A stretch of DNA of 64,000 nt from Klebsormidium nitens (taxonomy: Eukaryota > Plantae > Klebsormidiophyceae), in assembly GCA_000708835.1 (NCBI GenBank), contig DF237246.1, positions 44,325 through 108,324 on the forward strand. The letters run 5' to 3'. Shown here piece after piece: positions 1 to 62,729 of this stretch; position 1 is the stretch's first letter; the number at the start of each line of letters is the position of its first letter. The notes under the pieces were generated by a model. The model was not told where the DNA came from. It saw nothing but the letters and a program-made list of their open reading frames with translations, and did not search any database. The position numbers were made by a program, and so were the translations under genes.

Positions 1-3000
1 GCACCATAAGCGGGTGGCGCCGTCGGAGTTTGTGCTGCGAGAGTTGAGCCCCACGACGCAGATTCTGGAGAGCGATGAGATCACGGGGAGGGCCGCGAAA
101 GTGCCGGGCAAGGTGTGGCTTTGCATGACGGTGCGCGCGGACAAGCTGCAGCGGCAGACGCCGGGTGAGGCTCCAAGAATGAAGGACATTTGATATAAAG
201 TGCTTTCTGCACAAAACTGCAGGGATTTGAACAGTTGGAAGGGTTGGAGATGACCGAGCTCTAGTCTGCGTAAGCCTGTCATCTGTCAACAGACCCTCAC
301 ATCCATCTGGATCAAATATCACATTCTGACCGGACCCTGGTCCGTCAGACCAGATCAGCAGGACAGGAAAAACCCAACGATTCTTCAATAGGAGGAAGCT
401 GGATCTGTATAGCAACAAGACGACTGCTTCACTTGGCAATCACGCGTCTTGGCGACCTCTAACGGCGAAATGAGTACCTCGGAAGGTCGAATCACCAGCT
501 CGCATGGTGGCAGAGCCAAGCCCGTTACAACGGGGGAGCAATTTCGCCACTTGACTGACCAGCCTTCGCATATTCTCAGGGCGAGACCCCGTGAACGACT
601 GGAAGCTGCGCGTCAGCCCCGTCATCAGCCTGGAGAACGACCTCCCCGAGGGGGGCCAATTCACGGTGTACGAGAAGCCCCCCAGGGCTTCTTTGGAGCC
701 CCGACAGAGCGGCGAAGTGGACAGCGGAAAGCAAGTCGGGATTCTCGCTGCGGACGTCCGGCGCCCGGTGTTCCTCAAGTGGGAGTTCGACGGCTGGCAG
801 ATGGATAAGGTGGGGCCACGTGGCTGCGACACGTCCCCAATGTCATTTAAGAGAGTTTTTGGAGTGATCAGAGGCTGTCTTACGCATGTTCGGTTGCCAG
901 GGTGGGCGTGCTTGATTGTGTGAAGATGTGTTTATCCTCTGCCGTCTGCCCCAAAATCGTCGATTGTCGTGACCTTACTCTGACGGCCCATATGCTTTGA
1001 GAAGGCACCCACTGCCAAATCACGATCTTACGACATCTTCTGCTGCTCAGCACTGGCGACGGGAAGAATGTAAAACTTCCTTAAAGCTGACCTTGAAAAC
1101 CTAAGAAAGTCGGGCCTCTTGAAAAAGCGTCGTATACGTACCTGGTTCTCTAAAGCTTACGGACAGGCTGAAAGCCATTACGTTGTTCTGCAAAACGAGT
1201 GTGAATTGGATGACAGTCGATCTGCTTTGCTTTGCAGGACTCGGTCCTCATCTCTCATCCCGACAAGTCCCCTGAAAGGGTCCTCTCCTTGACGCATCTA
1301 GACACAAATAGGTAAGTCCTTTGACTCTGGATTGTTTTGCGGGTTCTACGTCTCTTCGCTGCTTTCACGGCTCACGGACACCACGTTTGGAGCAAAGACA
1401 TCAGCAGAGCTATGAGATAGCGAACTCTGGACTGGCTCACATGTTGAAGCAGAGAGCGACGCCGCCGTTACATACTCCTCGCATTCGATATGATCAGAGG
1501 TTCTAGCTCTGGACAATTCGATTGTCGCATCACCAACTTGGAAGGCCTTTGGGGAGCTTCAAAGACCGCTTTCCCGGACCTGAAGCGGCTTCTGGAAACG
1601 TCAACTTCCGGAAGTGATACACGTCTCCGCAATTTCAGGCACCTCCGGTTGGGGCTCGACTTCCAACCGAGCGACGGCGAGCTCCCCCGGTTGATCCGGC
1701 TGTACGCGCCTTTCTGGCTGCAAGTGCGCCCGGGGCTCAAACTATCCATCCAGGTTGTCAAAGTCAGCGGCACTGTGGCCGCGGGAAAGGGCCGCGACCA
1801 CTGGATCGGGCAGGCCATCGCCCGGGTGAACATCGCCAAGCGGATCGCCGAGCGGAAGGAGAACAAGCAGCAGGCGAAACAGAACCAGGTTGCCCCGGTA
1901 AGTGCCTGAGTTCGCCCGTTTTGGGTCCGACCGAGGCCTCAGAGCGCAGTATTTAGTATGTATCCGCCGGCGACGATGCCAAATACATGGTACCATTGGC
2001 AAGTGGCTAGCAGTAGTCTTGGCAGAGTCGTCCTCTGAATGGTGCTATGTTCAAAAATTGGTCCCATAGTGGCGCAGTCTGACCCCTTGTTGGAGTGCCC
2101 TTTCCCAGATGTTCTGTGGAATGATCCAGGCAGAATTGAGCAGGTCGGCGACCCAGATATTCACTTTTCTCCATTGAAGTTTAAGCCTTAAAGTCTCCAG
2201 GGTATTTTGCCTGATTCTTGCCCGCCTTTCAGGCGGCGGAGGCTGCTGCAGACGTCTAAACAACCGGTCGCAGCCATTCTCGCGAAAACTGATTTTAAAA
2301 AGTATTTCTGCAGGCCGACGTGGTGTCTTTCTCGCGGGTGGCCAAGGTGCTGGAAGACCTGGGCGACGTGGCGCCGTCCGAGCCCGTGCTGCTGTCCCGC
2401 GCTGCGGACGACAAGGCGGGACTGTGCGTCCGCATGGCAGGCTCGGACGCGGACTACGGACCCGCGCTAGCGCTCGCAGAATTGGAGGAGCATGCGGTGA
2501 GCGGTCGAAAGGGTACCGGAATATGTGGTTTTGAGGTTTTAGGGGTTGAGTGGAAAGAAGATGCAATGTACACGGACCGGCTTATGGTGGCTTGAAAGCC
2601 GAGGAGTAGGTGGTGAGCTGTGCACTGGGTTTCAGGATTTTTGACAGCTGAGAAAGATACAGGAAAGAAAAAGCTGCAATACTGGCGCTGCCGGCAAAGT
2701 CGTGACGTCACGAATCATAGGCCTTGAAGGTCTGGATTTGAGCGGTGCCCCACATAAGACAACTTGGGGCTCCGAGAAGTTGCAACGAGATTTGCCACGA
2801 ACCACACGGTTTTTGCCGCTCGATATGGACGGTTCGACCGATGTCTTCGCTCAACGATGGCTTGAAAAGCTCTGCACTTCACACGCTTCTCATTTTGGCT
2901 GCCGCTTTTCGAAAATGACGAAGCTGTCTGACGTCTCCAAGAGTGTCGAAAGCGACCGGACGCTTTCGCCACACACTGAGACCGTTGCGGACGTTATGGT

Positions 3001-6000
3001 CGCGTTCAATGATCTGCGGACGCTTGTCTTTGCGTGCAGGCGGACCGCGTGGAGATGATGGCCCGCGGCAGCGACGGCTCGTACATGAACGTCATGGTGG
3101 GCATCGAGAGCTGCCCGCTCAAGATCGAGACGACCAGGGTGAGGACGCACAGTCTCAACATACTTTGCTTTTGCAGGAGCGTAAAAAAGATGTGCATTGC
3201 AGGAACCTTGAAAAAGATGTGCTTTGCAGGAGCCTAAGAAACGTTGCGCTTTGCAGGAGCCTAAGAACAAATGCTCATTGGTGCTGGAAGATCGTGGCGA
3301 GAACGTCGTTATGCCATGTGCCCTCTTGTTTCTGTTCAAGGCGTCGTTTGGGAGCCAGATGGCTTCAGGTTCCGAAGCGACGTCTTGGAGTCGCTAGCAA
3401 GGCTGCTTTGAAAAAGATGCTTGAAAGCAACTTTCAAGTCAGCCTAGGATGTCTCTTTTGGTTCTTAATCCTCGTTTGAGCAGGGCTATTGTCTGCGTAA
3501 CAAATCCTCCCTATCTGTGCAGGTCATCATGTTGCAGCCGCACACGCTCCTCTCGAACCAATACGGCGATACGATCACGTTCCGGCAAGAGGGGACTGAC
3601 AAGGAGCTTAAGCTAGACGTCGAGGCCGCCGCCGTGCCGCTGATTTGGACGTCAACAGAACATCCCGAGCGGATGGAGGTTGGTCAATAAAACCCTCACG
3701 GCTGTACTAGGATCGAAACTCGACCAAGCTTCGTAGCTTTTCTTGGTCGAAACATCAAGGAAAGCCGGCGGATGTAGCGCGCATGATGTGCGTTTGCCAT
3801 ACTTGTTCGCCTCTTTTCCCGAAATTGGAGGTCACTGGTAGAGCGAGCGTGACGGTCATGGGTAGAGCGAGCGACTAGAATTCTCGTCAAAAACAGTTGG
3901 TACGGCGACATCTTTGGGACCCCCGGCTTTTTCATCAAGGAAGCGGTACTTGAAACTGAGCAGTGTCCCACTTGTTCATTCTCTCTTCTCGATCTCTTTG
4001 CAGTTTCTTCCTGAGTTCCCAAGAGTTGTAGTCGCTCCAGACGAACATGGGCACAAAGAACCGTTCAGCCAAAATGGAATTTAAAGCCAATTACGAATTT
4101 GGGTCCTTTTGCAGGTCCGGGTAGGCGACCTTCCCTGGAGTCGCCCCTTCCGCACTGACGAAGACGGCACGCTCACGGTTCTCATGGGCGACCTGACCCA
4201 CCCCCTGCTGCCGCGCCTTCTGCGCATCGAGATCCGCACTGTCTTAGAAGAAGCGCGTTTCCTGGTCACTTTCCGTCGCCCCCCGATTCACCCCCCCTAC
4301 CGCCTCGAGAACCGCTCGGGGAATTGCGTTCTGGAGTATCGTCAAGGGGGGTTGCCTGATGAGGCGCAATGGGCCGCGCTGGACCCCCACTCGGCGGCGG
4401 CGTTCGTTTGGCAAGATAAGGTGCAGGAGGAGAAGCGACTGGAGGTGCGGGCGCGCGTGGGGGGAGTACTGGGCGAGCCGCAGAGCTATGACCTGGAGCG
4501 GCTTGGGAGGCTGGACAGCCTGCCAGTGCCAGGTGCGTTGAAGTTGAAACCGTCCTTCTACTTTTTAGTCGTGTGTCTTTCGTAAATCGTTCCTGTGCTT
4601 CAATTGTGTCCTTTCGAATGCTGCTGTTTCCGTTCCGATAGCGCCAAAGAGCGATGGAGTCTTTCTGGGCTGCAATCTCACAGCCACCACCGAAATATGG
4701 TGAGACCTAGTTGCGAGCCGGTTCTTTCAAGCGACCAGAATGGCAAGCGCAGAACCCACTCTGGTGGACCCCTTAATTCTTCTTTAATATACACTATTCG
4801 CAGCGATGCTCATCTTCAAGAAGGAATACGAAAGAGACAGAGTCCTTTGCCAACGGCAAGTTTCGTACGGTGGTCTATCGGAACGACGCTCGTGCTTCTG
4901 TCTTCCCTTCGAATATCCAGGAAACGGAGGACAAGAAGGACTGACCTAGTTGCGCGTAAATTTTCAGGCAGTGGCACCGCCGGCGGTCCGCCCCAGCTGG
5001 AAGCGTTCCTCTACGTGGAAGGCCCGGAGCGTGTGCTGCGCTTTGTTGTCCCGGAAGGCGACCGCCAGGTGGTGACCCGCAACAGCGGCGCCGGGAAAGT
5101 AGGCGAGCTGGCCTCCGACTGGGTGGGGGCCACGCCGGAGGACTCGCTCGGAACCTCGCAGGTGAGCCATATGTTCAAGATCGAAAACCTTGAGTAGGTA
5201 AGCCAAACTCATTGTGAGAATTTGAGTGTTGAGCTTTTGGCTACGTGAATTGTCGGGGTCGTCGGATCCATGTAATTCTGTTCCTTCAAGTTTTGAAGAC
5301 TTTGGGACTGTGGGGTGGTAAATTTGTTGAGCTCACAAGGCTTCCGTTCCTCTGGCCTGAACTTCATTACTCCATTAGTATTGCTATAATACCAAGGTCT
5401 CTCGCTTCAGTGATGGGGGAGTGTTAGCCAGTAAGGAAGCTCACTTCAGTGATGCCTGGAAAAAACCTGTTTTGCCCCCAAACTGGACCCTACTTCGGAT
5501 TACTAACGTTCTTCTTTTTTGCCAAAGGCCTTGCACTATGTGAGCTTCTTCCCTTAGTTTAAGTGGAGAATGAGCTTCGTCAGCAACGTTCAAATGGCGC
5601 ATCTGCAATGGCGTTTTCTAAGCCGCAAACTTTATTTCTTTACCGGTATAGCATGACTCAGCCCCAAAATAGAATCGGGCTTCTCAAAAACCATATTTTG
5701 ACCCGCAGGCGAGCGCCCACTTGCTTGACGTCAGCGTGGACGTCCCGGAGCTGGGCCTGTCCGTGATCGACCACGTGCCCCAGGAGCTGCTGTACTGCCA
5801 CGTGGCAAGCCTGCAGCTGGGCTATACCACAGGGCTCGGGAAGGGCGTTACACGCACGCGGCTGCAGCTGCGCCACTTCCAGGTCAGTATCTTTCAGTTT
5901 AGGATCTTTTGCAGTTCCGCTCAGCAGATAGTCGAGTTTGAGCCTTTTAAAAGCTTCTGAGATCAAGGAGGCCATAGAAAGATGATTTGGCCATGGTATC

Positions 6001-13058: not shown

Positions 13059-16000
13059 ATGGACACAACATCGACACACCCCTGGGCCCTACAACTCTCT
13101 TCCCCCCTCCAGTTTCTCACCTTGAAGACAGAAGAGGGGGGCGTCAAGCCTGAGATTGCAATCCTGTTCTTTGGGCTGGCCCTCATTTTGGGCGCGCTCT
13201 GCAAGCAGGTCTCTGCACACACGCTCGTCCCCTACACGGTGGCCCTGCTCATCATTGGCATTGTCCTCGGTGTCCTTGGTGAGTGGCCTTTCTACTTACT
13301 TAGAACGGTCTTGATCGCTCTTTTGTATCCTGGTTCTCATGAGAGGGACCCGCTGATGAGGCCAGCATGCCATGAATCTTATGTCAGCTGAGAAGTCAAT
13401 TGCAAATGCTTGGGGACACTGTCAAGGTTTAAAGGCATTGGAGCTGTGGTGAAGAAGTTCGACAGCTATGGCACTGACTTTCTTGGACCATTTGGGCTTC
13501 AACAAATTGAAAAGCCATGTTTCCAATAGCTTTCCTCCGGGCATGGCACAAATTGTTCTTTGATTATGGAAAGGTCGGTTTTTAGAGGCGATTCGGGTTC
13601 TGACGGCCTTGGAAAGCTGAGCTCAACCTGTTGCAGAGGGGGAATGAGCTGGTCCGGCTTGATGGATGAATGCAAGCCCCCTGTCTTTGGACTCTCTTCT
13701 GAGCTGTGTCTCTTAACCAGGCCGTAGACAATGTTCTTAAACAGGGGCAGTCTGCCTTGTATGAAGCAATGAATCAGACATAAGCCAAACCTTGATCCAT
13801 GCCCCTACATGTTCAAAGACCTGTGCGGTTGCGACTCAGCAAAGGAGACATGTTTTAAGCTGTGATTACCGAACACAACTCAAGCTGTGGAAACCATTTT
13901 TCTTCATCGTATTTGTGTGCCCAATCAAGCCCGCTGGGGCAGACCCCAATTCTTAGAAAAAAGTGGACAGAAATTCCATTCAATCGAGCAGTGAGCTCCT
14001 TCTCTGGGGCGTCTAAGGGGCGGTTCGGAGGCCGCTTTCCTAATTTGCAAACTGGCTCTGGTTTGCAGGGCACGGGGACACAGGAAGAATGTGGTTTTCA
14101 ATGTATGGGGAATTCTCAGACTATGTTTGTGTATGACTGTGCAGATCACGTGCTGCACAATGGGCTGGGCACGCTGGGGGAGAGCATCCAGATATGTGAG
14201 TGGCCGTGGCAACGGACTGTACTGTCATCTCAGACGCAATTGTTGACACCGGAGTGCGTGTTGCAAACCTTTCTGACAGCCTTGCAGACGCTCCTGATAG
14301 CTTTTATCTGTAGTTTCTAATTTGGTGCGGAAGCATTCTTGTGCCGCGACTCATGCTGTTGTTTGGAAGTTTCGGAATCTGGAAGATTTACGTTCTTTGC
14401 TCCATCCCAGTCACTTTGTTTCACCACCTATTTGTGTCATCGTGGCGCACCTAGAGGAGATCGAGAAAGGTCATTATTTGCTTACCCTTTAGTGCATGCT
14501 GCACGTGTTCTCCCCACCGGACAAAGACCTGTGCTTCCTTAATTTACCGGCCGCCGCATCTGGATTCTTAGCTCAGGCTGACTTCTCATCTCCCACACGA
14601 TGTTGAAGAAATGGTCAAAGCTTGGATGGTTGGAAGGCCGACATGGACAGGGAGGCGGAGTCGGGTTATCTGTTTGAGCTCGCCACTAGTCTCATGCATC
14701 CACTTTGTCCATTTCCATCCTGTGCTGGTCACCACCTGTTTAAGCGCAGTTTCGAATCAAAGATTAACTCTCGTGTTGCAGGGGCCGACATTGAACCTGG
14801 TCTTATCCTTTTCGTCTTCCTTCCGGCGCTGCTCTTCGAGAGCTCCATGTCGATGGAAGTCCACAAGTCAGGGTGAGCGGTAGAAACTTCCTTGTCCGTT
14901 TGAAGAGAGCAGAATCCACCACTTCACTGGGCGAGTCATGGTCAAGCATTGGCCAATCTCTCTATGTTCTGAGGGAGATGAACGGACTTTCAGTAGCCGT
15001 AGTTCAGATTGGATAAGATCTGGGCAGTCTAAAAGCGGCACTTCGACCAATCAGTCCCGCGCTGAAAATGCAAATAGAGATGTCCCACGTCCAGATTTTG
15101 TCTTCTGAATTGGATTGAATGTTCCATCGTGGATAACACTGGGCCATGAGTTATCCGACAGCGCTAGACCCGAATCATCCTGGATCGACTTGCAGCTTAA
15201 ATCTGGTGTCGAACATCAGTGCATAAGACGACTGCCAACGAGGTTAAGCACTATCACTGCCTGTCAACCGGCAGCCAAGTATGGTTGACACGCCATCTCC
15301 CCGAGCAGGGTGTACCCCATACAATCATACAGCCACCACAACTGATGAGCTTGCTTGCGGTGTCCGCAGAAATGCCTGTGGCAAATGTCGCTCCTCGCGG
15401 GTCCGGGGGTGCTTGTTAACACCTTTGTTCTGGGGGCCGCTCTGAAGGTGAGGTCATTCACTTAACAACTGCGGTGTTAACACGCAGTCAGACTAAACCC
15501 TTCGAGCTTGTTCTTTCAAGGGATCCCTTATCTGAGTTGGCTACAAACCTCTAGCCCTGCTTGTTCTGAGGTCGCTCGTGACCAAAATAAAGTCAACCGT
15601 GGCAAAGGTGAAGGGGAAGCCTTCGAAAGGAAAGATGATCGACAGTCGTTCTTTTTCGCTCAATACGTGGTCTTGGCACCCCCTAACCGTAGTGCAGAGT
15701 TCGGGCTGAGATGTTCGCAGGCTAAGGAATTGTCATTTCAACCGAGCCTTCTTCAAGACCTTCTTGCTTGGTGGTGATGCGGATTTCGAGATTCCCCCGA
15801 CGGTCGTTTCCAGGCTACCCGACTCATTCTAGTCCGATTGTTTCGAGCAGTGCAGCCTCCTTTTGTCCGAGAGGCCACCGTGACTCCAATCCAACTCAGT
15901 AGAAAGGCTTCCCACCCAGTGGTTAATCTGAACCCATTTGCAAACCCGCAGTTTTGCTTCCCCTATTCGTGGAGCTGGGGTCTGTCCCTGACGTTGGGCG

Positions 16001-19000
16001 GCCTTTTGAGCGCAACGGATCCAGTGGCAGTGGTCGCCCTCTTGAAGGAGCTGGGCGCCAGCAAGAAGCTCAACACCATAATCGAGGGGGAGTCGCTCAT
16101 CAACGACGGGTAAGTCCCAGGCGTGGTTGGGTTATTCTGGATGTGGGCCACACCACGTGATCGAATAAAAAGGAAACTTCGAGAACTTTAGGAATGTTAC
16201 TCAGTACCGTTAAATTTGGACCTCTTCGTGACCCGAAACGTGAATCAGGGTCCTGCAGGCAGACGAAGGGCACACTGCCACCTCATTCACAGAAGCACGG
16301 TCCAATACAGATCTGCGAAGTGACAGACATTTGTGAGCACAAACAAGCTCAGAACTCATTTTAAGCCAAGACCAGCATACACCCAATTCCAATCCAAACC
16401 CAGTTTAATCCGGCCAAGTTTGCTTGGGAACATTCCCAATTAGGAGATGAGAAAGTGCTTCTTAGAACAGGTTCTTTGGGCGCCCCGGCTTTGTATCACG
16501 CGTGACGTACATAAGATTGCGCACGGCGGTCAGGGTTGAGTTTCAATGAACGCTGATTGGCGGACGAGATTTGAATTCTCGGCAGCGCTTCGTGAAGCAA
16601 GCATCTTTCTTGCCCGCAGCACGGCGATCGTCGTCTTTCGCCTCTTCTACCGGATCGTCTTCGGCAGCAAGTTCAACTTCGTCAACACAATCGTCTATTT
16701 TATGCAGATCTCCTTTGGAGGGTGAGTCCAGGGACGGGAAACGCATGTTCTACGCTTAAATGATGTAGCGGCATTACAAATGTGGAGCGGCCCGTGTCTG
16801 TATCATTGAGGATAAGCAAGACGCCGTTTCGGAGCGGATTTCAGGGGCCATTTTGCTGAATGCGGACTTTTCTTGCATACGACGTCAGCCCCGCCCCAAC
16901 TTCTCTTCTCTCGTGTTTTCAAAGCCAGTGCTTATCATTCTGCGAGAATCATGACAGTGGCTTGAAACGCGATGGATTCCAAACTCGAAACGTTGTGCGA
17001 TCGGTCGGTCCTCTCCCCGGCTTTTCCGGTCACACCTTCACCTCGTGCGATTTCCTCCTGCAAACTCTAACCCCCGAGCTGAGTTACCGCCACCTCCAGT
17101 CTTAGGCTTGCCTGAGCTCATCTTCGATTTTGTAGTGACATCGTGCTGCTTTTACAATGTCGCCGGTCTGAGTCTATTCTTGCTCTGTAAAGTGGCAAGC
17201 AATGAAAATAATTATCCTGGAGCCAACTGTCGCGTTAATCCCACCGGTCTGAGTCCACTCCTGCCCTGCAGAGTGGCAATGGGCATCGCCTTTGGGCTGG
17301 TCGCCATAATGTGGCTCGGTTTCGTGTTCAACGACACTCTCATCGAAATCACCATCACGGTCTCGGCCGCGTATATGGTCTACTTCACGGTGAGCTGACA
17401 CGTGGCCCCAGCCGTCCGATTTGACACGCTGCAAATCAGCATCGAGAAACTTGATTCTGGTTGTCATCCGTTTGACATTGTTGAGAAACCTCGTCAAGCA
17501 GATTCGTCAATGCAGTTCGCTCATATGTGCATCTGGTTCCTCAAACGGAAATTGGGGCTTCCAAGTTTTCACCTTGCAAGCGGCTTCGAAAGCGAACGTG
17601 AAGCGGATTTGCTCCTGATAGCCAAAGAAAAACCTTCACATCAACCTTCACGACCAATATTGCGACGGGATCCTATCCTTCGAATACTCTAAACTGACGT
17701 GACTTAAATTGCCATGACGCCCGCCCTTTTTGACAACACAACTATTTCGTTAAAGTTTTCAAGAGTCGTTTTTGCGCAAGGCATTTTAAGTTTTCAAGAG
17801 TCGTTTTGTGCAAGGCACGCTAAGAGGAATGCCAACTGCAGATTCTGCTCGATCCACGGTGGAAGGACGAGGATCTTGTTTCGACCCATGTCAAGACCGG
17901 TGTGCTCAAAGAATCAGACCGCTGTCTTACAAGACCCTGGTTTCGCAGATCGCAAGTTGGTTTGCTTCTTAGTTCTTAATCGAACTGTCGGAATCTTAGT
18001 AAGACGGACCTGCATCGTTGCCATATCTGGGCTGTTCTTTTCAGGGTTCCTCACACTCGACATCGCTCTGTCTTGTCTGCAGTCGGAGCAGAATGCGGGT
18101 GTCTCTGGCGTCATCGGCGTTATGTTCCTTGGAATGTGAGTTCCGCTTTCGTAGCCCTTTCGGTTTGGGGCCTTTCGCTGAAAAGTCTAGTGCATCAACA
18201 CAAATGTCAGGTGATGTTCGGGAAAGGAATTATGCCTCTGGCTAAAATGGAGGCCTTTCGAGTAAATGAATATGACGGATCAGTGCCGGCAGGGCGTTCT
18301 TGATGAGAGGAGATAACCTTTGTATGATCGTATCGAAACGATTGAAATCTCAGATTCTTACTAGCGAGAATAGCTAGTCTGGCCGTTTGATCCAGGTTTC
18401 CATTCGTGCGGCATGGTCTGCGAAGTCCTCTCAAGGCCGTGCTCGAATCGGCCTTTCGCGGGAAGAAGCCTCCTGCTTATCCTCCTATCTTGTACCTTAG
18501 AGGAACTTTTGCATTAAGCTGTTGACGAGTTATTCCCCACGAGTTTCTCCTCATTCCAAACTCGGCACGGCCTTTCATAAGCCTCTCGGCTTCGGCTCTA
18601 TTTCGCAGATTCTTTGCCGCGGTCGGCAACACGGCGTTCACGGGAGAGCACAAGAAGAGCTTGCACCACTTCTGGGAGATGGTCGCGTACATGGCTAACA
18701 CGCTCATATTCATCCTCAGGTCCGTACAAAAAAAGTAATTTCGGCCTAGTTGCAGGTTTACCCAAATGCTATCTTTGCCCCAATTGGAGTGAAATCCTGT
18801 CAATCTGCAAAAGCAGGTGAAATATAAGGTGCAATGAGTATCAAGGAGATCCCCTTGCGCCGCAGTGTCAGTTGCAAGTTATGTTAGACCCAGTTTGATA
18901 CCCATTCAGCCCGGATTACAGTCTTTTGCTCGTGTTGGGTGCGTGCAGTGGGGTCATCATTGCTGAGGTCATCCTGCGCAACACGGAGAGCATCGACGCG

Positions 19001-29700: not shown

Positions 29701-29779
29701 TTCCTCCTGCCTCTTGCTTGTGGAAGACTGCTATTTGCCATAGTACAACAACTAAATGTACCGTATGAGCGAACGCACT

Positions 29780-35900: not shown

Positions 35901-37012
35901 TTGATTTGAAGCGCATCTCACAGCCAACAGACATCTACGCTCTATGATTGGCTGATTGGGGCAAGACAAGCTGCCTCTACAAGCAGGGAACTGCCTGAGC
36001 TTTTACTCAATTTCGTTGCTGCAGATCTACGTGAAGAAGACTCCGGGCGGCCTGCGGGCGATCGGCCCGGACGGGCGGCCCATCGAGCCGGATGATGTGA
36101 TGCAGTACCTGCGGAGAAAGTTTGGGGACAAGCTGGAGCTCGTCAAAAGTGAGCGCGCGCGCTCCCTTGAACGAGAATAACGGCTTATAGCAATCTTTGA
36201 GACTTCCAACCTGGAGATCAATAAGGTGGTGCCGCGGTTCATTAAGCGCGCGTGCTATAAGTATGAGAGCGCGATGCATACAAGCTGATTTCCTCTTCGT
36301 CCCGTTGGTAGCGGAGTCGGTCGCGTGTGGGCAGAACGTTTTGGACACTTCACATTGGCACCAGAAAGCTGGCTGACACGCTACTCAAGATCTTATTTGC
36401 CGCTTTTTAAGGCTCCTTCCCTCATTCCCTCATTCCCTCATTCTGTCAGCTTGAGAAATTGACTGCTCTGAGCCGATCGCAACGAGAAGTTTTGTCGAGT
36501 GAGGGTGCATGCGCTTTGCAAGAGTCTCCGTGTTACTCCCAGGGGTACCGCAAAATGCACTTTCGAACTCTGTCTGCATCTACTCCTATGCCCTCAGAAG
36601 AGCTGCGTTATTACCAAAAGCTCTATTTCAGCGTCGGGATCTGTTTCTTCGTTGCAGAATCCTGCCCAAAGGCGACTTCGATTGCTGTTGTTTAGGTCAG
36701 AGGAAATCTGTGTACGTGCGATCGAAAAATATCAGCCGCTCTCAAAAGCCCAAAAAGTTCCCGTGTCTCTGATCAGCGCTGTATCATTCCTGCAAATGAA
36801 ACTTCTTCCTTGCAGAGGCCATGGAGTCGCTCGCGTGCGTCTACTCGCCAAACGAGATCGGCGAGGTGGCTTACGACCTGTATGAGAAGTTCCGGCCACC
36901 GGTGCCCCCGGGGCGGAGCGGCTTCGGAACGAAGGGCCCCCTAGACCTGGCATACATCTCCAAGACCTTGGTAGAGGAAGCGAGAAAGGCAAAAGGGAAA
37001 GCCAACGCGTAG
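32925..37012 (+). CDS. Conserved protein of unknown function (~310 aa): charged disordered N-terminus plus a C-terminal domain I recall from bacterial and algal hypothetical proteins
   Basis: Phase-consistent exons 32925-32985 (or -32973), 33424-33567, 33937-34059, 34545-34727, 35348-35448, 36025-36148, 36816-37012. Domain reads VNRAPVLALWVAVVAQREG...SKARHLGI...KTPGGLRAIG..GRPIEPDDVMQYLRRKFGDKL...AMESLA...AYDLYEKFRPPVPPGRSGFGTKGPLDL. Confidence 0.85.
36417..36443 (+). repeat. Short tandem repeat (TTCCCTCA)x3
   Basis: Read directly from the sequence, in the last intron of the 32925 gene. Confidence 0.9.
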
Positions 37013-46400: not shown

Positions 46401-49400
46401 TGTTGCTCCGCGTCGTCTGGTAGTTGGCCCACACCGAGTGAAGCACCGCATCGGGGCTACGACCACCCCCGAACCGCCACAGCGTCTGTGAAGGAAGATG
46501 GGATAGGTTGGAGCTCTTTCCAGATGACTGTTGTATGGCCTGACTCCAGCGTCTGTACAGGATGATCTGCCGTTCGGGCACTCTACCACGACTCACCATA
46601 TTCAGCGCAAAAGTTCTACGAAAACAGAGAAAAGTGGAAGATTTGAAAGGCAACTGTCTCCGGTCCGACTCGCAGGCGTGCTGCCTTGGTAAGATCAACA
46701 GAGCTTAGGCACGTCTGACGGACGGGTACCCGTTCGTGTTGCGGCTTGCAGGATTGAATAGACATGTTTCCAAGCGGGCAGGCTCGCAGATACAGAGTGC
46801 AAACAGGCAGACCTTATCTGTGTGTAAGAGTGCATCAAAGACACTGGCTTCCATTTCGGCGAACTCGGCGAGCCGCTCCGCAGCGGGCACGTTCCCGCCG
46901 CGCTTAATCAACGAAACAAAGCAAGCCTTGAAAAGTACGCATAGCACTTCATAAACACAACATATCCGCAGCCCACTTCGGCAAACTCCGGGAGCAGCTC
47001 CGCGGCCGGCGCCTTCTCGTCGCACGCGTTCCACACGAGCGACAGCTGGACCTTGGCGCGCGGATAGCGTTCGCCGACGGGAATGGCCGTGTCGTGCTGG
47101 GTCGTCACCACCGCCTGGATGTACCGCAACTCGCCCTCGCCCGTCTCCTCGTCGTACGGCATAATCTGGAGCTTGACCATGACGTCTTTCACGAGGTCGA
47201 CCGCCGCGTTGATGGCCGGGTGGTGGGCCCTGATCATATGACGAGCAAAAACGAGTATTGGGTTTCGGATCTCGAAGAGAATTTGGAAGTATCTTCATCG
47301 TATGGCACTATCTGGAGCTTGACCATACCGTCTCTCACGAGGTCGACGGCGGCGTTGATGGCCGGGTGGTGTGCCCTGGACGAGTGTCAGACAGACCAGG
47401 ATTTGAGCACTTGAGAAAGGTTTTAGGAGGCAATCTCGGGGAGAGCGTATCTTCATCGTGCGGCAAAAGCTGGAGCTTGACCATGACGTCCTTGACGAGG
47501 TCGACCGCTGCGTCGATGGCCGGGTTGTGGGCTCTGATCACGTAACGAGCAAGAACATGTATTTAGATTCAAATTCAGAGAATATGAGGAAGCAAGAGTC
47601 TCCTCGTCGTACGGCATGATCTGGAGCTTGACCATGACGTCTTTGACGAGATCGACAGCGGCATTTCTGGCCGGGTGGTGCCCTGGACGGGTTTCAGAAA
47701 AAGCAGGATGTGAGCACTTGAGAAAGGTTTCAGGAGGCACATTTCAGGGAGAGCGTATCCTCATCATACGGCAAAAGCTGGAGCTTGACCATGATTTCGT
47801 TGCAAGGTCAACGGCAGCATTGATGGCCGGGTGGTGGCCCCTGATAACTTGATGAGTAGAGAAGAGATAACATTGTGAGCAGTTGCAGGCAATGACAGGA
47901 ACCAAAATTTCTGACGACCGACTCTTCGCCGTGAGGCATGATCAGGAGGACCATGACACCTTTCGCGAGGTCGACAGCGGCGTTGACGGCCGGGTGGTGC
48001 GCCCTGGATAGGTTTGCTACATTTATAACTTTAGCGGTTGAGGTTTTCGGAAGGCATTTTGGGGACACCGTTTACTCGTTGAGCGGCATGATTTGCGAAC
48101 TTGACAATCATTGCTTTGACGAAGTCAACGCGGCATTGCTTGGATTGAATCCTGATCAGTGTGCGCTTTGTAATGACTGAAGCGGGGCACTTGATTAGTA
48201 CAAGTGTTCTCATTGTTCTGCGGGTTTTCGGGGTCTGACCATGAGTTCTTAACGAAGTTGACAATGGCATTGTGCGGCAGGAATCTGGAGGGTGGAGGTG
48301 AGAGTGTTCGTACGCTTCTGAGCCCCTTCTGAGACCAGCGCCACAACTATGCCTATTGGCAGAAAGGAGCCACAGCTCAACCAAGCAAACATAATCGGGT
48401 GTAGATTCCAAAGCCCAAGCACAATCCGTCAACTTTAGTATGGACGGGTGCACTCACCGGCAGTTTGGTATGTCCGTGACTGCGTGACTGCCCTCCTGAT
48501 ACAGCCCAATCTGCGGGTTTCCGACCGTGCCCCGGACAGCCAGCCGGGCGCGACACCGCCACCCCCACTGCGCATTAGCATCACAAAAACCGGTTCACTC
48601 GATATACCAGGCAGAATGCGCTCCTTCAGCTCTTGTTCTGCCATCTCTTCCTGGAATCGTGTTGCGCCACTCGCTTCCGCGAGTTCACTCAACCTATCAG
48701 AGATGCAATTCTTTATTCTCGAGAAAGGTTGGCGCAAAGGACTCTTCTGAGTGCAACAAAACAAGTGAACTACCGTCGTACTTTTTGTTCACGCTGCGTC
48801 TTCTGACATGTGTCCCACGTCCAGCAGTAGCAACTTACAATGTCCCCAGTGTCGAGCTGAAACTCCCGCACTCCATGCCGCCCGAAGAACCGAGTAGCAT
48901 CGGTTAGGACAGGGGGCTTGTCAAGACCGATGTCTAGGACACAGCCAGAACACCTGCAGAACAACAACGCCGGTCGGTGATTTGAGATTATGTTTTCTTT
49001 TCTTCAAATGGACAGCATCGCCCGTCATGCGCTCTGGAAAGACGCCTCATCAAAGCTCCTAAGCGAATCTACCCTGTATGCAGTGCATTTTTAAGGTTAG
49101 CGGTTGCTCTTGCCGCTCTGTAGTGCTCCTCAAGGAGCGACTGTCTCGTCTGTCCAAAGAAAAGTAGCTTCGGATGGTGAACAGGATGCAGGACATCGTC
49201 TTAACAGGTCACGGACCTATGTACAGTACTTGAATCTGCTTCTGATGAGCGAAAGAACATCATAAGGATGCCCTCACCTTTCGAAGTGCTGACAGTCAAG
49301 CACAGTGTTCGCCGGAGCTGCCCCGCTCGGGCCGTCTCTGATTGCGTCCTCGACCTTAGATTCTTTCTCCCCAGACTGCACCACCCCCTCATCATTTGAC

Positions 49401-50474
49401 GAGATCCGGCTGTTCCTTTTTGTGTAGTCTCGGGCGCCCTTCTCCGTTGCACCATCTTTGGCAGGGCCGGCAGGCTTTGCCTTTGGGTACGGAGCGCCGG
49501 ACCTCTTGACTTTGGCTGGAATGGCCCCTGGTTTGGTTGGGAGCAACCCATCAAACTTTCCCTCGGCGAACAACCGTGCGGCCTCACGTAGGTCGCCCAC
49601 ATTTGTCACGGGGGGTAAACTTTTGAGAATGTCTTCGCCAGGGGACGATAGACCTGTGGCAACAAAAGGGCAAGTTTACATTCCGGAACGCACAAGAGAT
49701 GACTGGTTAGTTGATGCTCAGCTTGAAGGCTGAGGCAAAAAAAAAGAAGCCTAGACGCCTCAGCCCGACTTTTTCAGTCCTGCGCGGCAGAGACTACGAG
49801 ATGATGGTTGGTCAAAGTGGGTTACAAGGTGACAGGGGAGACAATGATGCCTGCCGGTGCTTCTCTCCTTTTTCCTTACAAAATGACAAGCACGGCGCAG
49901 AGGATCTTGTCTGAAACCATCCAATACAGCGCTGTGGAACCCTAAAATCTGCACCATTACCACCAGAACCACCGCAGGCGGTTTTGTAAATCTCGTCTGC
50001 AACCACCAGCGAAAATGACTGAAAGATGGAAAGGAGATCAGATAGCAAGCCCAACATAAACAAATAATAACCACCACCTCCATCGCCACAGAAACAGGTT
50101 GCAGCACAGGAAACCCTAATCTGAGACCCCTCCTTGTGCCCTTTCCAAACGACCAGCGCACCTGCATCCCCAAGTGCATCAACGTTCTGCGACCATTCCT
50201 GCGATAATAACGTTGCCCCAGCTCTTTCTCCCGCGACAGCCGTATGCTGGCCACCAGTTGAACAGCGAATGTTGCCAGGAACGACCACTGTAGGTAAGTG
50301 CCTATGGTGCCTGCCTAGCCCTTCACTTAAGAGATTCTGTTGAATGCTGAACGGTTGACCACGCAATCCACCAGGCCTGTTTGGGGCCAACAGAGTAGAT
50401 GCCTGCCCAAGTGAAGCGCCTCTGGAGAACGCGTAAGTGCAGCCCAAGCTGACACCCAGCATTGCTGCCTCCAT
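43440..50474 (-). CDS. TrmA/RlmD-family RNA (uracil-C5)-methyltransferase, organelle-targeted type (resembles Arabidopsis At3g27180 as recalled), ~720 aa
   Basis: Phase-consistent exons (minus): 50474-50162, 49653-49278, 48953-48839, 48567-48458, 47229-46977, 46485-46288, 45710-45592, 45173-45056, 44510-44146, 43635-43440. Motifs: CQHFERCSGC and DIPNCRAHHP (4Fe-4S-type Cys), WGWRCRARLAVRG, PASFGQAN, ELYAGAGAIGL (SAM), IVDPPRKGL, EEKRPWILR, LIYVSCG (catalytic Cys), FFPGTDSMEVLA. Confidence 0.93.
44892..44923 (+). repeat. Perfect 16-nt tandem duplication in methyltransferase intron
   Basis: CCGATTATAACGGGCG occurs twice, exactly. Confidence 0.95.
47145..48290 (-). repeat. Tandem array of acceptor+exon-head copies inside intron 4 of the methyltransferase (functional copy plus 6 recognisable echoes and 1 very decayed one; ~150-160 nt period, ~305-320 nt higher-order dimer)
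   Basis: AG acceptors (plus-strand CTG) at 47230 (real), 47376, 47534, 47683, 47841, 48004 and 48152. Each is followed by a copy of the RAHHPAINAAVDLVKDVMVKLQIMPYDEET codons; a remnant lies at 48236-48285. Confidence 0.97.
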
Positions 50475-50902: not shown

Positions 50903-51204
50903 GTATCACCTGCCTAGAAATCTGTTGACCAAAAGTGACAGCATGGCGCACAACATGAAGATATTTTCTGCCAGTGCAAATTGCAATGAAGGAAAAGTTT
51001 CCAAAAAGAGAACAGGTTGAATTTTACCTAGCTTGGGGGCTTCAGAAGGGCGGCACTCGCAGGAGTCGAGACGCTTGCGGGGGATCCAGGAAGATGTCAA
51101 GCGAAGTCTACGATTGAATGACCATGCGGTTTCCTCTAATATCGAGCTAATATCGGTAGCTTTTTCCTGAATCTGCATACTGTGCAGCACATGGGTCTCT
51201 TCCC

Positions 51205-54200
51205 ATGGACTCAGCGCAGCAGAGTCCAGTTCTCCCCGCTTGTTGCTTTGCCCCTGCCGCTTGGAAGGGCGTCCTTTCGAGCAAGCGAGCAAACCAGGTC
51301 GCCCCTGCTGAGATGGTTGCCTTAGAAAGTGAATCTGGCGCATCTCTTCCAAGCCAGGGTGCAGGTAAAGCATTCCAAAGTGCTGAAAATCATGGTTTGG
51401 AAAGGGTGGAGACGCCCCCAACAAGGGTGGGGGTGCATACAAAGCAGATTGTAGGAAGGGAGGGTGTTTTAGCAGGAAAAGGTGGCCCCTGCCGGTTGAC
51501 AGTTGAGATCAGAGAAAGGGGCGATGGGCTATCCCCAGAGAGGCCCCATTCAGGATTGTCATCAAGTCCGTCCAGCACAGAATGTGAGCCAATTCCTGCA
51601 GGCACACCTCTCTGGAACGCTCTGTTGCACCAGAGCCCCAGTAGGGAGCCCATTAGAACTTCCCACGCCGAAAAGTTGGATACCACAGCTGGTTACGTTG
51701 GCGGAGGAGAACCGGGGGAGTCTCCTTTGAAGCAGCTGTCAACAGTTGGCAGGGCGAGCGTGGTTGTCACGAGTGTCCCCAGCAAACTGAGCATCTCTGT
51801 GCCATTGGACCAGCACGCAGCCGCTGTGCACATTTGTACTGCTTCAGAGAGCAAGTCAGGGGGTCCTAGTGCCGGTGTCATGAGCTGGGGGGGGGTGGCA
51901 AGCTGCCTGCAGTGCTCAGCGTCGGCCGGGGCGCTTGACGCCATGCGAAAGTACTGGGAGCAGGCAGAGCAGAGGGCGAGGGAGGCGGAGGTGGCAGCAA
52001 CAAGGATGGGGAGGAATGAGGAGCGGTTGATGGCACAGCTGGCGTTGCTCCTGAAACAGGTGGGTGCTGGTTTGACACTGGTTCTTGTGGTGGGGTTTGT
52101 GTGGTTTTGTCTGCTTTGCTGGTTTGCGGACTTTCTGCTGTGATGAGCACTTTGAGCGCCATCCCAAATTTCTTTTCCTGATTCCAGCATGTTCTATGAA
52201 CTGCAGTGCAGACTCAGCAATTCAACAATTGGACTTGAGCAAGAGCAGAGGGGCAAACCAGGTGGATTGTGTCCCCAATGGTTTCATCATATTTCAGCCG
52301 GTTGACCATGTCTCAGCTTCTCAGCTACGTTTGTGGATGAATGTCTTTTCAGTTTTGCAGTCCGTTATATACAATGGTTGATTAAGTCAGGTTTGACTTG
52401 GTCATCAACTCCTGGATCGCTCGTCCTTGAGAATTGTACAAGGACCCTATGACTGATTAGGGGCACAATGTGTCAGCGCACATGGACATTTGTGTGCATT
52501 CTTTTCTGAGTCTCAGAGATCTCGCTGATGCTTCTTTTCTCAGTTGTCTGTAACGAACTTGGCATATGGAGAGAGTCATACTTTGTGCTGGGCTCGAAGA
52601 GGGATTTGTGGGGGAAAAAACAAGGTAACCAGTGAGTGTTTCAACAGTTCTGCTCATTTTAGTTTTATTCGAATGGAAGGAAATCATAAACGTCCAACAT
52701 CATGTAGCCATTCCAGTCGAGGTTGCAGGGGCGGCAGAGAAAGCAGTGACAAGCTCTGAAGCTTCTGGGTCTCGTTGATAAGAGACACAAGCAGATTCCC
52801 ACCAACTTCTGTTGTGTGAGCTTCTGAGCAACTTCGCTTTTTCCAGATTGAGCTGCGGCAGGTCCAGGTGGAGCACCTCTCGGGCCTTGTCGCGCAGCAG
52901 CAGGCGGCGTTCCTGGCCCTGGATGGGCGCTACTTGGAGCGCCTCCGCAGAGAACAGGGCCTCCCAGAGGAGCCCGCCACGTCACCCTCCCCAGAAGCCG
53001 TCAGAGGAGGGCAGTTCAAGCAGCCGGTGGGAAGAGAAGTCAGTCAAGAGGGTATCTTTTCGGAGGGACAGCTACAGGTGGAGCATTACACATCGAAAGA
53101 ACAAGGAAAGGCAATTGGGAGGGAGACAAAAGAGGAGTTGGCGACGGGTCAGAGCTCGCACCAGCATGATGTCAGCGAAGGGGCGGGTGGCGAGGCTAAG
53201 GTGAAGCGGCTTCACAGGGGGGCCTCGCTGGATGCCTGGGCGGAGCCAAGAGACGTTAGCGACATGGATGGCGATGCGGGGCCTTGTTGCGGAGATAGCG
53301 AGAGCGGGGCTGATTCTAGCTTCGAGTTTGATACGAGCCCGCTGGCCGTTTTGAGCGCCAGTTCCCCTGAGGCGGAAAGCGAGGGGGGCTCGCCAGGCAT
53401 CCGGCGAAAGCGGAGGGGACAAAGAAAGGAGGTGGAAGTAATCGTCGAAGAGATGGTCGACGCGTGCGCAGGCCTCGAGTCAGCGCAAGGTGGGTTTGGC
53501 GAGTTCTTTGTGTCGCCGAATGTGCCGGAGAGCCCGCTCAAGAGGAGGATTAGGGATGGAGATAAGCGGTCCTGTGATAGCCCCGTTGAGAGTGAGCGGG
53601 ATTCAGGCAGCCCGCCTGGCGAGGGCGTGGGTGCAGGGCGGAAGCCGGGGCCTGAGGGATCAACAGAGGCGAGGTCGTCTGAGCGAGAAGTAACTGAACA
53701 AAGTGGTTTTGGTGGGTCGGAGGACGCGGTTTTGAAGTCGGGAGAGGGTGACGGGTTTGATCAGCAAGAGAGTGCTGTTGAGGGAGATGCGGGAGCGGTG
53801 GAAGAGCAATGCGTGGAGGTACTGCAGGGGGAGGTTGGAGTCCCGGAGTTCTTACGAGTCAAGCAGGATAAACTCAGCAGCAGCGAGGCGGAAGGCAGAA
53901 GTAATGGGAGCACAATGGGGGTGGGAAGTGCTAGGGTCGCTTTCGTTTTGGGAGATGGTGTAGGGCAGCAAAAGGCCTGGGGCGGGGGGGAAGCAAAACG
54001 GGAAGAGAAGGAGAGCGGGAGCGAAGAAATGGAGGAGTTTCTGGGGCTGGCAACGGAGGAGAAACACATGGGATATGGAGTCGAAGAGCAACTGCAAGGA
54101 AGCGCACCGCCTGAGTTGACAGAGGTGGGCAGTTTAAACAACCTGGGTCAAGGAACAGGGAGAGAAGTGACCGTGGAAGGGGCTGAAGCTTCGTTCCAGT

Positions 54201-55333
54201 TGGGCTATGCCGAGTTGGCGCGGGCAAGCAGTTATGACGAGAAAGCGCTCCGGAGCAGTTGGCCCGTCACTGCTGCCGGAGCTCCTCAGATCCGCACAAT
54301 GAACGGGCGATGGGTCGAAGGGGAGGGGGCGGAAAACATCCCGAGCGACGGACGGATCCCCGAGCAGAACGGACGCGCATATACTGTTGACGGGAGGTCC
54401 GGATCTGGCGCTTGGGGCATGGTGCCACTTGAAATCGCGCAGGAGGTGGTAGTTGAGGGTTTCGGTGAGGAGGACTTTGACGGTTGGCGGCACGGAAGCG
54501 TCAGCGAGTCCAGGTCCGCCTCGCGCACGAGCGCCGATACTTTCAGCCCGGAGCCGCCGCTGATGGAGAGCTCGGGGGGGGCGTCGAGGACTGACGGCTT
54601 TGCAGAGCGGTCTAGCCCCCAGGGACGGCAGGGCGCCTGGCGGGGATCCCCTAAGCTGGTTCCGTGTAGCCCCCAAGGGCCGCGCTCAAAACCGCCCTCT
54701 CCTCGGGTCGTGTCGCCCAAGACCGGTGTGCCTACGCCTCCGGTGAACCCCCGGGGGCCTTCTCCCTCCAGCCCCCACTTTGCGAGCGCACACGAAGTGT
54801 CAAGGAAAATGGTCGGGACCGTGGCAAGCGGTCGAAGGGTTGGGTCGCAGGGCGACTTCGGGGCTGCCGCCCACCGATTGGACACGCGAGCGGGGAGGCT
54901 TTTCAGAAGAGACAGCCTGCCGAGAAGAAACAACACCTCGGATCCGTTCGGGCTCCAAGAAGCGGCTCTCGTCCCGCATCCGCCGGCCGTGGCGGCTCCG
55001 GCTAGAAAGCCGTCGACACGGGAGAAGCACTTGGCGGCGAGCGTGGGTGGCAGGCAGAGCAGCGATAAGGAGAACGACCTGCCGAAGGTGCCAACGGTCA
55101 CGCTTCGGTTGGAGGGTTTGGGGTTCAATCGGAAGACCGGGGGAGACTTCGAGAATGGAAGGAGGGTAGGGTCAGACTTGATGCAGACGTCTGGGTTGGA
55201 GTTGGGAACGGAATGGGGTTCAAGTGCGAGTGATGTACATAGTAGTGACGTAGCCGCCCCGGAACCTCCTGCGAAGCCACGGACGACATCCTCCCGGCCA
55301 CAGTTCCGGGCACTTCGTCCAATGGCAAGCTAG
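51205..55333 (+). CDS. Uncharacterised ~1113-aa low-complexity (S/G/E/P-rich) protein with a central coiled coil
   Basis: Exons 51205-52059 (CAG|GTGGGT) and 52847-55333 (TTCCAG|ATT) join in frame. Heptad-like segment LDAMRKYWEQAEQRAREAE...LLKQIELRQVQVEHLSGLVAQQQAAFLALDGRYLERLRREQ spans the intron. No other domain recognised. Confidence 0.75.
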
Positions 55334-60458: not shown

Positions 60459-62729
60459 TCAGGACTTTGAGCCTCGAGACCCCAGGTCGAGGTTGATACC
60501 TAAGAATCCGCACAGAACCAACGTGCCGCCAACCAGCATCAGAGGCTTTGGAACGATTCCAAAGATGAGAAGCTCGGCAAGTATAGCAATCGGTGTTTGA
60601 ACCGCCAGGCCCACGCTTGCTGCGGTTGGGGTTGTTAGCAGCATAGCCCTTGCACACAGGTAATCAGCGACAACGTTTCCGAATATACCTGCATTAGAAA
60701 GAACATTGGACGACTTTAGGCAGGAGCGACTTTTGTGTTTGTGGCCAGGGAGCCAACTTGAAGCAATCTGACCCTGTGAAAAACTCGTGCAGATTGCCAA
60801 AGCCTTGCTGAATGAACAGGAACTTTGACAACAGACAAAGACCCCGCCGTCTTGAAAGACACACCGGTGATGCTGACCTTCCAAAAACGGACCGAGAAGA
60901 GTACTTCTGCTTGGGGAAAACGGGACAATTTCCTCACCTTTGACGATCAAGAGCCCGAACGTTTTTGCCCCCATCCAACGCAGGTTCTCCAACCCGGTCC
61001 ATGCAAGCAGCAACAGGCACGGCAGCAAAAACACACCGGCGAGCAGACCCATATACCCAAACACCAGGGACGTGCTGACCGGCTTCTTGCCCCGCTTGCT
61101 AGGACAGCTGTCAAGATCCTCCCCGGTTTCGTCTGGCATCGTGTATTCGACACTAGTGCCATAGAAGGCGTAGATTATGGCCGCCACAAAGGCAAGTCCG
61201 TTGCCTAAGGCAGGCCCAGAAGGGATCGAAAGGGAGCCGTCCGACTCAGAAGACGACTCCACGTCCGAGATGCTGACGACCACTGTTCCCAGCATGGCGC
61301 AAACGATCATGGCGAGCTTGAAGATCGTGAACGGCTCCTTCAGCCAGATGACCGAGATCAGGAAAGTAAAGAGGCTCGTGGAAGAGAATATGATCGTGTT
61401 ACTCTGCACCCAAACAGGAGGAGATATGTACTAAGTCAGTAGCAGATAAAGACGTCCCAACCCTGGTGGAACAAGGGCAGTTAGCGAGCCTTCGCTCTTC
61501 CAAAGATTGGCAGTTAGTGAGCCTCCGCTCTTCCAAAGCTGTGAAGAACGTAAGATCTACAGTAGCAAAAGTACCGCTGATGGCTCTTGCTGTATGAACT
61601 GCAAGCAGACCCTCCACCAAGAAGATGCACGTCCTGCAAACAATGGACAAGCAAATAGAGGGAACAATAGAAAGTCAAGGGGAAATGCGAAGTTACGTCC
61701 ACTCCGAGGAATCTGATTGGAAGAAGTACTCACAGACACGGTGGTCAGGCCCAGGGACAAGGTATATGTGTACTGTGCCATAAACCACAGCGGACCAATC
61801 ACGGCCGCAATCTTCACAGCCTCCCAATGCTCCGCACCTAAGGGCCCCAGCCTCAGGCCCCTGAGCGAACCCTGGTATGCGCTCACAACCGGTTCGGTGC
61901 TGTCCAATGCATCATCCTGCGCTTCTACATCGGGCAGTAACGGGGCCTGCCCCTGGCTGTCAAGTCCCCAGGACTTCTGAGGTTGAAATCCCAGCTCCGG
62001 AAGGCTCTGAAGTTCTGCTCCATCCTGCCTACCTAAGGTTTCTTCCGCCATCGACTTGCTGCCGATTGGAGTGCTGAACAAGGTCCTGACTGCAGCGACA
62101 TTGACGGGGCCCCCATGGGCCGTTAACTCAATTAACTTGCTTGGAGAAGCGGGCGCCTTCCAAGCTTCTAAGACGGACAGTATCGGTGTCTGCGGTTCAG
62201 ACACGCTCCTACTACCCACGTCCCCGGAACTTTCTTCCGGGCCCAAGAGGGCAAATGGCAGTGCGGCCCCTACATGGGGGTGCACTTCTCTCTCACTTCC
62301 TACCCGCCTCTCATCAATCGCCGCCGCTTCCAACTGGAGGCCTCCCGCACTTTCCTGAAGCCCTCTACTCCAATTACACCCATTTGCCTCCCCGTCCTCA
62401 ACTACCGAAGCCAGTTTTCTCCATTGGCTAGGGCTCCCTGCCCCTGGAGAATCCCCACCATCTGAGCTTTTCTCTTTGCGCGAAAGCTCCCAAAAGCCAG
62501 CGTTATGCCCCTGCCGGTACCAGCGGGCGAGCATGGCACAGGGGAGGTGCAGAATGAACAGGCATGATGAGACGTATGACACCAGGAAGGACGACGCGCC
62601 CCTCTCTATGATCACCTGAATGGCGAACCCCGCAGAAATATACAGGAGCCCTGCCACTATCACTAGGCCCAGGCCAAGGGCCTGCCGTCCCTGGGGCAGT
62701 CTGCCAAGCGGGAAGGCACCTTCCGCCAT
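60459..62729 (-). CDS. EamA/DMT-superfamily transporter, SLC35F5/THI74-like, ~563 aa
   Basis: Exons 62729-61734, 61403-60938, 60688-60459 are in phase. Hydrophobic helices; motifs IGPLWFMAQYTYTLSLGLTTVSSNTIIFSSTSLFTF, GNGLAFVAAIIYAFY, GNVVADYLCARAMLLTTPTAASVGLAVQTPIA. Upstream minus-strand splice signals (acceptors 62764 and 63414, donor GTAAGT ~63944) suggest a spliced 5' leader. Confidence 0.9.
61476..61540 (+). repeat. 33-nt tandem duplication in EamA intron 1
   Basis: GGCAGTTAG(C/T)GAGCCT(T/C)CGCTCTTCCAAAG occurs twice. Confidence 0.92.

Follow-up and report, generated by a model that had tools for sequence, protein, structure and literature searches.

Intron 7 of the human F7 gene (IVS7) contains a minisatellite, a 37-bp variable number tandem repeat (VNTR) whose first unit spans the donor of exon 7; it is a single human case (Borensztajn et al. 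2006; PMC1557585). Splicing at IVS7 selects the donor lying furthest upstream, and the intact pseudo-donors therefore remain silent (PMC1557585). A tandem duplication of an intron/exon boundary is also known from the potato RdRp gene (PMC4974935), in a paper that cites Gao and Lynch (2009) on internal gene duplication in eukaryotic genes and the tandem-duplication work of Rogers (1989). Here we analysed a stretch of nuclear DNA of Klebsormidium nitens (contig DF237246.1, positions 44,325 to 108,324; 64,000 nucleotides, hereafter the window), in which some introns carry diverged copies of their own splice junctions, termed junction echoes. The echoes are real and statistically solid, and they are rarer and more mundane than the original prediction, made from the letters of the window, had proposed. 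In our full-text literature search, no paper presented junction echoes as widespread, and none dealt with them in Klebsormidium.

The gene models were built with a purpose-written exon-chain finder that uses codon log-odds, splice-site matrices and reading-frame consistency, and the final junction set comprised 60 introns (median length 478 nt), 120 junctions and 30,349 intron bases. The finder was correct at 36 of the 40 SOS1 junctions, as judged by an exact mapping onto the window of P0001, an NCBI protein titled "Na+/H+ antiporter [Klebsormidium nitens]", and at all 14 junctions checked with RNA. Each junction was represented by a 60-nt probe (30 nt of intron and 30 nt of exon) aligned to at most 400 nt of the interior of its own intron with +1/−1 scoring, and the same slice of every other intron served as the control. 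Eight of the 120 junctions scored at least 14, against 0.3 expected. Their scores ranged from 14 to 40, whereas the best control reached 9–12, and seven of the eight matches extended at least 4 nt to both sides of the junction. Introns resembled their own junctions more than other introns did, as had been predicted. At a score of at least 11, 16 junctions were found against 6.2 expected, indicating a real echo at about 9–10 junctions (~8%), in 8 of the 60 introns. Significant echoes were located in VPS13 (one, weak), SOS1 (four) and a minus-strand gene at 43440–49653 (three), and the junction test gave none in the gene at 33937–37012, the 2OG oxygenase, the gene at 51880–55223, the SET gene and EamA. 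The statement that many introns echo their own junctions was thus right about the existence of echoes, but a spread over many introns in every named gene was not supported, and five genes gave no significant echo. Most of the weaker echoes called by eye were indistinguishable from chance, and only matches of about 14 or more (+1/−1 scoring, 400-nt search) are a safe criterion for such calls.

The echoes are listed below; a slash within a motif marks the splice junction.

2485–2643, plus strand: VPS13 donor 2497 (exon ends at 2496), real copy 2485–2527, echo 2601–2643, offset 116, 29/43 identical; the echo retains GTGAG and is the weakest accepted case.
17156–17279, plus strand: SOS1 acceptor 17272, real copy 17237–17279, echo upstream at 17156–17198, offset 81, 34/43 identical, CAG changed to TAA.
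20456–20646, plus strand: SOS1 acceptor 20611, exon head 20612–20642, echo 20456–20485, offset 156, 25/31 identical, no AG at the corresponding position.
23677–23803, plus strand: SOS1 acceptor 23786 (TAG/GG), full tandem with a 56-nt unit, echo upstream at 23677–23739, 51/64 identical; the echo keeps an intact CAG/GG at 23730, whereas the used acceptor is TAG, so that the decoy is stronger than the used site.
24877–24988, plus strand: SOS1 donor 24882 (after 24881), full tandem with a 68-nt unit, echo downstream at 24945–24988, AAG/GTGGG retained.
46480–46566, minus strand: acceptor 46485 (exon 46288–46485), real copy 46480–46499, echo 46547–46566, offset 67, 17/20 identical, ACAG kept; borderline score of 14, junction confirmed by RNA.
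46851–47023, minus strand: donor 46976 (exon 46977–47229), real copy 46973–47023 (47 nt of exon), echo 46851–46901, offset 122, 40/51 identical, GT changed to AT; junction confirmed by RNA.
47143–48140, minus strand: array of six units of ~150 nt at acceptor 47229, in intron 47230–48457 (Tandem Repeats Finder and alignment).

The junctions with echoes were fixed by the annotated P0001 for SOS1 and by RNA contigs for the minus-strand gene. Every echo lay on the intron side of the used site, with acceptor copies upstream of the acceptor and donor copies downstream of the donor, which is the geometry of junction-spanning local duplication that had been proposed. The RNA joints 46485 to 46977 and 47229 to 48458 confirmed that the used site is the outermost copy for three echoes, and the mRNA is thereby unchanged. 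Full tandems among the window echoes had units of 56, 68 and ~150 nt, and the remaining echoes were direct repeats at offsets of 67–156 nt. The intron-gain model of Rogers likewise takes tandem duplication as the mutational source; it predicts that the intron start resembles the downstream exon head and the intron end the upstream exon tail. This permuted geometry, expected to be missing, was indeed absent from the window (0 matches at a score of at least 11 versus 0.3 expected; 1 at a score of at least 10 versus 1.4 expected).

Several further features were observed at individual echoes. The echo at 17156–17198 departs from its used copy, acceptor 17272, at nine bases, and six of these changes are C-to-T or G-to-A. 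A 21-nt tandem at 20600–20646 (plus strand) straddles SOS1 acceptor 20611: the last 11 intron bases before the acceptor (TGACCGCGCAG) are similar to the sequence found 21 nt further on in the exon (TGACCGGCGGG), and the exon after this acceptor encodes the repeated peptide VVFLTGG-VVFLT. For intron 46486–46976, which holds the donor echo, an unspliced contig over the whole intron (46456–47006) was present in three of the four RNA runs at a depth of 20–29, versus 58–112 for the spliced form, which suggests sizeable retention of this intron. A whole-exon case was also seen in SOS1.

26338–26681, plus strand: acceptor and head of SOS1 exon 26358–26459, echoed in the next intron at 26604–26681 with AG changed to TG.

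This copy looks like the remnant of a ~270-nt tandem duplicate that held the whole of exon 26358–26459.

The array at acceptor 47229 is the strongest of the echo cases. Each unit consists of a spacer, CAG and ~87 nt of exon head. U0 (47143–47288) contains the used acceptor (47229/47230) and U1–U5 (47289–48140) are the echoes; CAG/GG is kept in all six. The spacers are of two alternating kinds, giving a higher-order period of 304 nt. In all four RNA runs the main mRNA joined 47229 to 48458 and bypassed the whole array, and no joint at a decoy site was found in the contigs of these runs over 44000–49999, although contigs drop rare isoforms. RNA contigs from independent runs covered 46456–47006 and 47476–48425 with zero differences; the repeats are therefore not assembly errors. 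The units hold only the first ~87 nt of the 253-nt exon, no echo unit ends at a donor position, and U3 and U4 carry frame-breaking deletions of 2 nt and 1 nt. Changes private to one echo unit were even over the codon positions (5/5/7). The spacer relations (U0 with U2, U1 with U3) conflict with the relations among the exon parts, which suggests exchange between units. An array of duplicated alternative (mutually exclusive) exons was also considered, and it does not fit the partial exon copies, the deletions in U3 and U4 and the skipping of all units in the main mRNA.

The same test was applied to a paralogous K. nitens SOS1 locus on another contig (L001), onto which its protein P0022 mapped exactly with annotated exons. 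Five of its 44 junctions scored at least 14, versus 0.12 expected, with scores up to 42, and full head-to-tail tandems of 65-nt and 166-nt units were present. At L001:21771–22200 two echoes follow a donor at distances of +166 and +325 nt; both contain 70–80 nt of exon tail and are 78–81% identical. The donor annotated there is weak (GTCGGA), with a GTGAG 23 nt further downstream; the public model may therefore be off at this point.

Compared with F7 IVS7, the K. nitens donor echoes at 24882 and 2497, and at L001 positions 15116 and 21852, have the same anatomy: head-to-tail repeats, a first unit over the exon–intron boundary and use of the outermost upstream donor. F7 IVS7 is one locus, whereas in K. 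nitens ~8% of junctions are affected and acceptors are hit as often as donors. Unlike those of F7 IVS7, the K. nitens copies are mostly old and diverged (66–88% identity), and the site-choice rule described for F7 may or may not hold in the alga. The duplications of Gao and Lynch, as cited in the potato RdRp paper, and of potato RdRp itself are similar in that small intragenic tandem duplications copy exon–intron structure together with splice signals. To judge from that account, they differ in their focus on new introns or coding sequence, whereas here the mRNA is unchanged and an existing intron is lengthened.

In land plants, the junction test was performed on the SOS1 loci of four species; the Physcomitrium match was an RNA contig without introns and was left out, and queries for SOS1 loci of Nymphaea and Populus gave no match. 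The numbers of junctions scoring at least 14 were as follows.

Marchantia paleacea SOS1: 0 of 46 junctions.
Ceratodon purpureus SOS1: 0 of 46 junctions.
Brachypodium distachyon SOS1: 2 of 44 junctions.
Riccia fluitans SOS1: 2 of 56 junctions.

Both Brachypodium matches fell in one intron, made from an 83-nt tandem of its donor junction. This first tested intron (L005:1236–1460) is 161 nt long, which corresponds to about two 83-nt donor-junction copies, with the acceptor in a third, partial copy; it may have been built or extended by tandem duplication. K. nitens had 13 of 164 junctions and the four land plants 4 of 192 (P=0.012), a 4–5-fold rate. The rate is thus higher in K. nitens, but the phenomenon is not confined to it, as the SOS1 genes of Brachypodium and Riccia fluitans show, and the sample is small. 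Local-repeat density, measured without annotation, was 1.9% of probes for the window and 5.4% for L001, against 3.0%, 0%, 2.7% and 0.2% in the land-plant loci, and the exceptional duplication activity claimed for this DNA consequently stayed unproven.

The fate of the echo sequence was examined by pooling the window echoes with those of L001. GT or AG was retained in 14 of 18 echoes (78%), no lower than the ~64% expected by neutral decay at ~80% identity, and selective killing of decoys was therefore not supported, contrary to the assertion that echo splice sites are specifically killed. The dinucleotide was lost at 17188, 46854 and L001:17168 and was not alignable at 20455. Two of the losses that had been read by eye, CAG to TAA at 17188 and GT to AT at 46854, were correct. 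The change of AG to AA reported at 4729 could not be read from the sequence, since it rested on a bare exact match of 12 nt with 14 nt between its end and the junction, and the match at 10121 did not exceed the controls. In echoes with enough exon-derived sequence, the differences between the real and echo copies numbered 15, 17 and 32 at codon positions 1, 2 and 3 (of 134, 136 and 136 exon-derived sites), and the intron-derived part of the echoes differed at 20% of sites. The approximate 1:1:2 ratio fits an echo drifting by ~10–12% per site at all positions and a real exon changing at silent sites only. The echoes thus fit dead copies drifting neutrally beside a constrained copy.

Junction echoes were accompanied by local direct repeats across the window. 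Ungapped direct matches scoring at least 14 at offsets up to 300 nt numbered 38, versus ~1.8 expected from offsets of 1–6 kb. Gapped 50-nt probes scored at least 15 in 119 cases within 500 nt downstream, versus 5–6 in distant controls (5 at 2–2.6 kb) and 16 with the strand inverted. Dispersed transposon- or introner-like units were looked for within the window only, where matches 1–6 kb apart were at background level. The following repeats lie within introns.

3170–3267, plus strand: 27-nt tandem repeat, 3.7 copies, in VPS13 intron 3139–3522, spanning no junction (Tandem Repeats Finder).
17750–17824, plus strand: 35-nt tandem duplicate within a SOS1 intron, 35/40 identical.
25489–25782, plus strand: cluster of intron-internal direct repeats, offsets 32–224, in SOS1 intron 25443–25888.
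44892–44924, no strand assigned: perfect 16-nt tandem duplicate in intron 44511–45055 (Tandem Repeats Finder).
61476–61538, no strand assigned: 33-nt tandem duplicate, 28/30 identical, in EamA-gene intron 61404–61733 (Tandem Repeats Finder).

Three of these, at 44892 (16 nt, 100%), 61476 (33 nt, 93%) and 3170 (27 nt, 3.7 copies), had been singled out as fresh and were recovered as such. The repeat identities ranged from 100% down to ~66%, which indicates that duplication has been long-running and is still going on, in agreement with the prediction. The further idea that duplication explains intron size in this lineage was not supported by this window, as recognisable extra copies made up 4.3% of the 30,349 intron bases, or 2.2% when the array intron was excluded.

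The genes of the window and the introns of the minus-strand gene are listed next.

1 to ~11586, plus strand: VPS13 (Pfam).
~13110 to 27950, plus strand: SOS1, cNMP-binding (Pfam).
Near 40233: 2OG oxygenase (Pfam).
44511–45055, 45174–45591, 45711–46287, 46486–46976, 47230–48457, 48568–48838 and 48954–49277, minus strand: the seven introns of the minus-strand gene (RNA contigs).
Near 57936: SET protein (Pfam).
60938–62700, minus strand: EamA (Pfam).

All seven introns of the minus-strand gene were confirmed by RNA contigs from four runs over 44000–49999, and all are GT..AG; Pfam searches with single exons of this gene, which carries the array, gave no name. An exon translation matched P0001 at 100% identity. 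This annotated protein begins at an internal Met (15385, plus strand). The exon ending at 13278 and the following ones at 14145–14195, 14782–14873 and 15370–15447 give a translation of which 118 residues align with the N-terminal end of P0022, the paralogous protein (BLOSUM62 score 491), and the public SOS1 model therefore looks ~130 residues too short. At 52820–55330 (plus strand) there is an 837-codon open frame with no Pfam match, and GC skew is strong there (0.26 at 52001–54000).

We consider it quite probable that ordinary small tandem duplication, a viability filter and neutral decay together explain the echoes. Small tandem duplications with units of ~16–330 nt would arise all along intron-rich genes, perhaps by replication slippage, break repair or unequal exchange. 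Duplications lying entirely within an intron would be harmless, and those over a single junction would be tolerated if splicing keeps the outer copy, that is, the upstream donor or the downstream acceptor. The inner copy would then become intron sequence that echoes the exon edge and the splice site there, and the mRNA would not change. The echo would subsequently decay neutrally and the used copy stay constrained, and arrays would enlarge through further unequal exchange. Such a process would involve neither targeting of junctions nor specific removal of decoys, and the observed pattern would represent the survivors of the viability filter. The data show directly that echoes are in excess, how they are arranged, that they decay in a neutral pattern and that the array is skipped in RNA; how the duplications arise, and why splicing ignores intact decoys, is what we infer.

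Several observations weigh against this explanation. The full tandem persists in only about 5 of 14 echoes, and the others align over less than the offset and may partly have an origin other than simple tandem duplication. The scoring rate of junction probes was about threefold that of probes from intron interiors (7/119 versus 17/798, P=0.03). Among the 18 independent events within the modelled genes, 8 were junction-spanning and 10 intron-internal. This split is compatible with uniform placement and the viability filter, which predict 4.85 junction events, but the null was passed only marginally (P=0.07); junctions are not clearly preferred, and a modest preference is possible. The exon-derived parts of the array differed by 8/6/25 over the codon positions, a third-position bias stronger than that of the 1:1:2 model; the shared third-position differences would be successive snapshots of an evolving functional exon, to which unequal exchange may add. 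Finally, VPS13 and several smaller genes were modelled by the exon finder alone, and the RNA consisted of assembled contigs, in which rare isoforms are hidden, over 6 kb (44000–49999).

It is highly improbable that the echoes as a whole are chance, by-eye alignments of splice-signal-like and composition-biased sequence. The failures at 4729 and 10121 are what chance would give, about a third to a fifth of the matches at scores of 11–12 are expected randomly, and exon-only 36-nt probes stood out against the adjacent intron in just 3–4 of 124 tests, although such probes are too strict because many echoes are mostly intron-derived. The separation of the eight junctions from the best control, the near-zero controls at distant offsets and with the strand inverted, and the replication on L001 speak against it; the chance reading is refuted for the eight listed junctions and stands for the weaker ones. 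A process targeted to junctions, for example through transcription- or splicing-linked breaks, followed by selection disabling the decoys, also appears improbable, albeit not to that degree. It would agree with the excess of scoring junction probes, with the 8 junction events where 4.85 were expected and with the higher rate of K. nitens than of the four land-plant loci. The enrichment is small, however, and no larger than the slower decay of a constrained copy would lead one to expect; this decay would account for part of the junction/interior difference. With less target sequence for interior probes as well, we see no need for a junction-targeted mechanism. Many equally fresh duplicates lie distant from junctions, and the disabling of decoys is at odds with the 14 of 18 retained sites, among them five intact CAG in the array and the stronger decoy at 23730.

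The proposal that the echoes are functional, as alternative exon starts or ends, as decoys tuning splicing or intron retention or, in the array, as former alternative exons, is very improbable. It draws on the CAG/GG kept in all five array echoes, on the variation of their exon-derived part mainly at third positions, and on the retention of intron 46486–46976, with its donor echo, at roughly one quarter to one half of the depth of the spliced form. Against it stand the bypassing of the array by the main mRNA in four runs, the zero decoy joints in the contigs, the broken frames of U3 and U4, the lack of any echo unit ending at a donor position, the even private changes and the fit of the other echoes to neutral decay. 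The bypassing also leaves unproven the suggestion that duplication supplies raw material for alternative splicing. Tandem duplication filtered by viability and followed by neutral decay thus remains our explanation.

A separate proposition, which we regard as unlikely, is that small tandem duplications strike splice junctions, or persist there, at an unusually high rate in K. nitens. If it were true, K. nitens introns would hold hundreds to thousands of intact unused decoy splice sites, duplication would act on intron growth as a force specific to the lineage, and the genome would offer a natural library of spliceosome choice among identical copies in the plant lineage. The echoes already provide natural cases for the rules of splice-site choice in this lineage: an intact copy beside the used site, a run of five acceptors that are all intact and, at 23730, a CAG decoy next to a TAG in use. 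They also reveal a simple way, open to measurement, in which introns gain sequence. The 30 kb of intron held 18 events, with units averaging ~95 nt and a detection limit of ~67% identity; by a rough estimate, this could correspond to a gain of about one third of the intron length per neutral substitution per site, if deletion does not balance it. At such a rate, tandem duplication would be a real contributor to intron turnover, though recognisable copies are a small part of the present intron bases.

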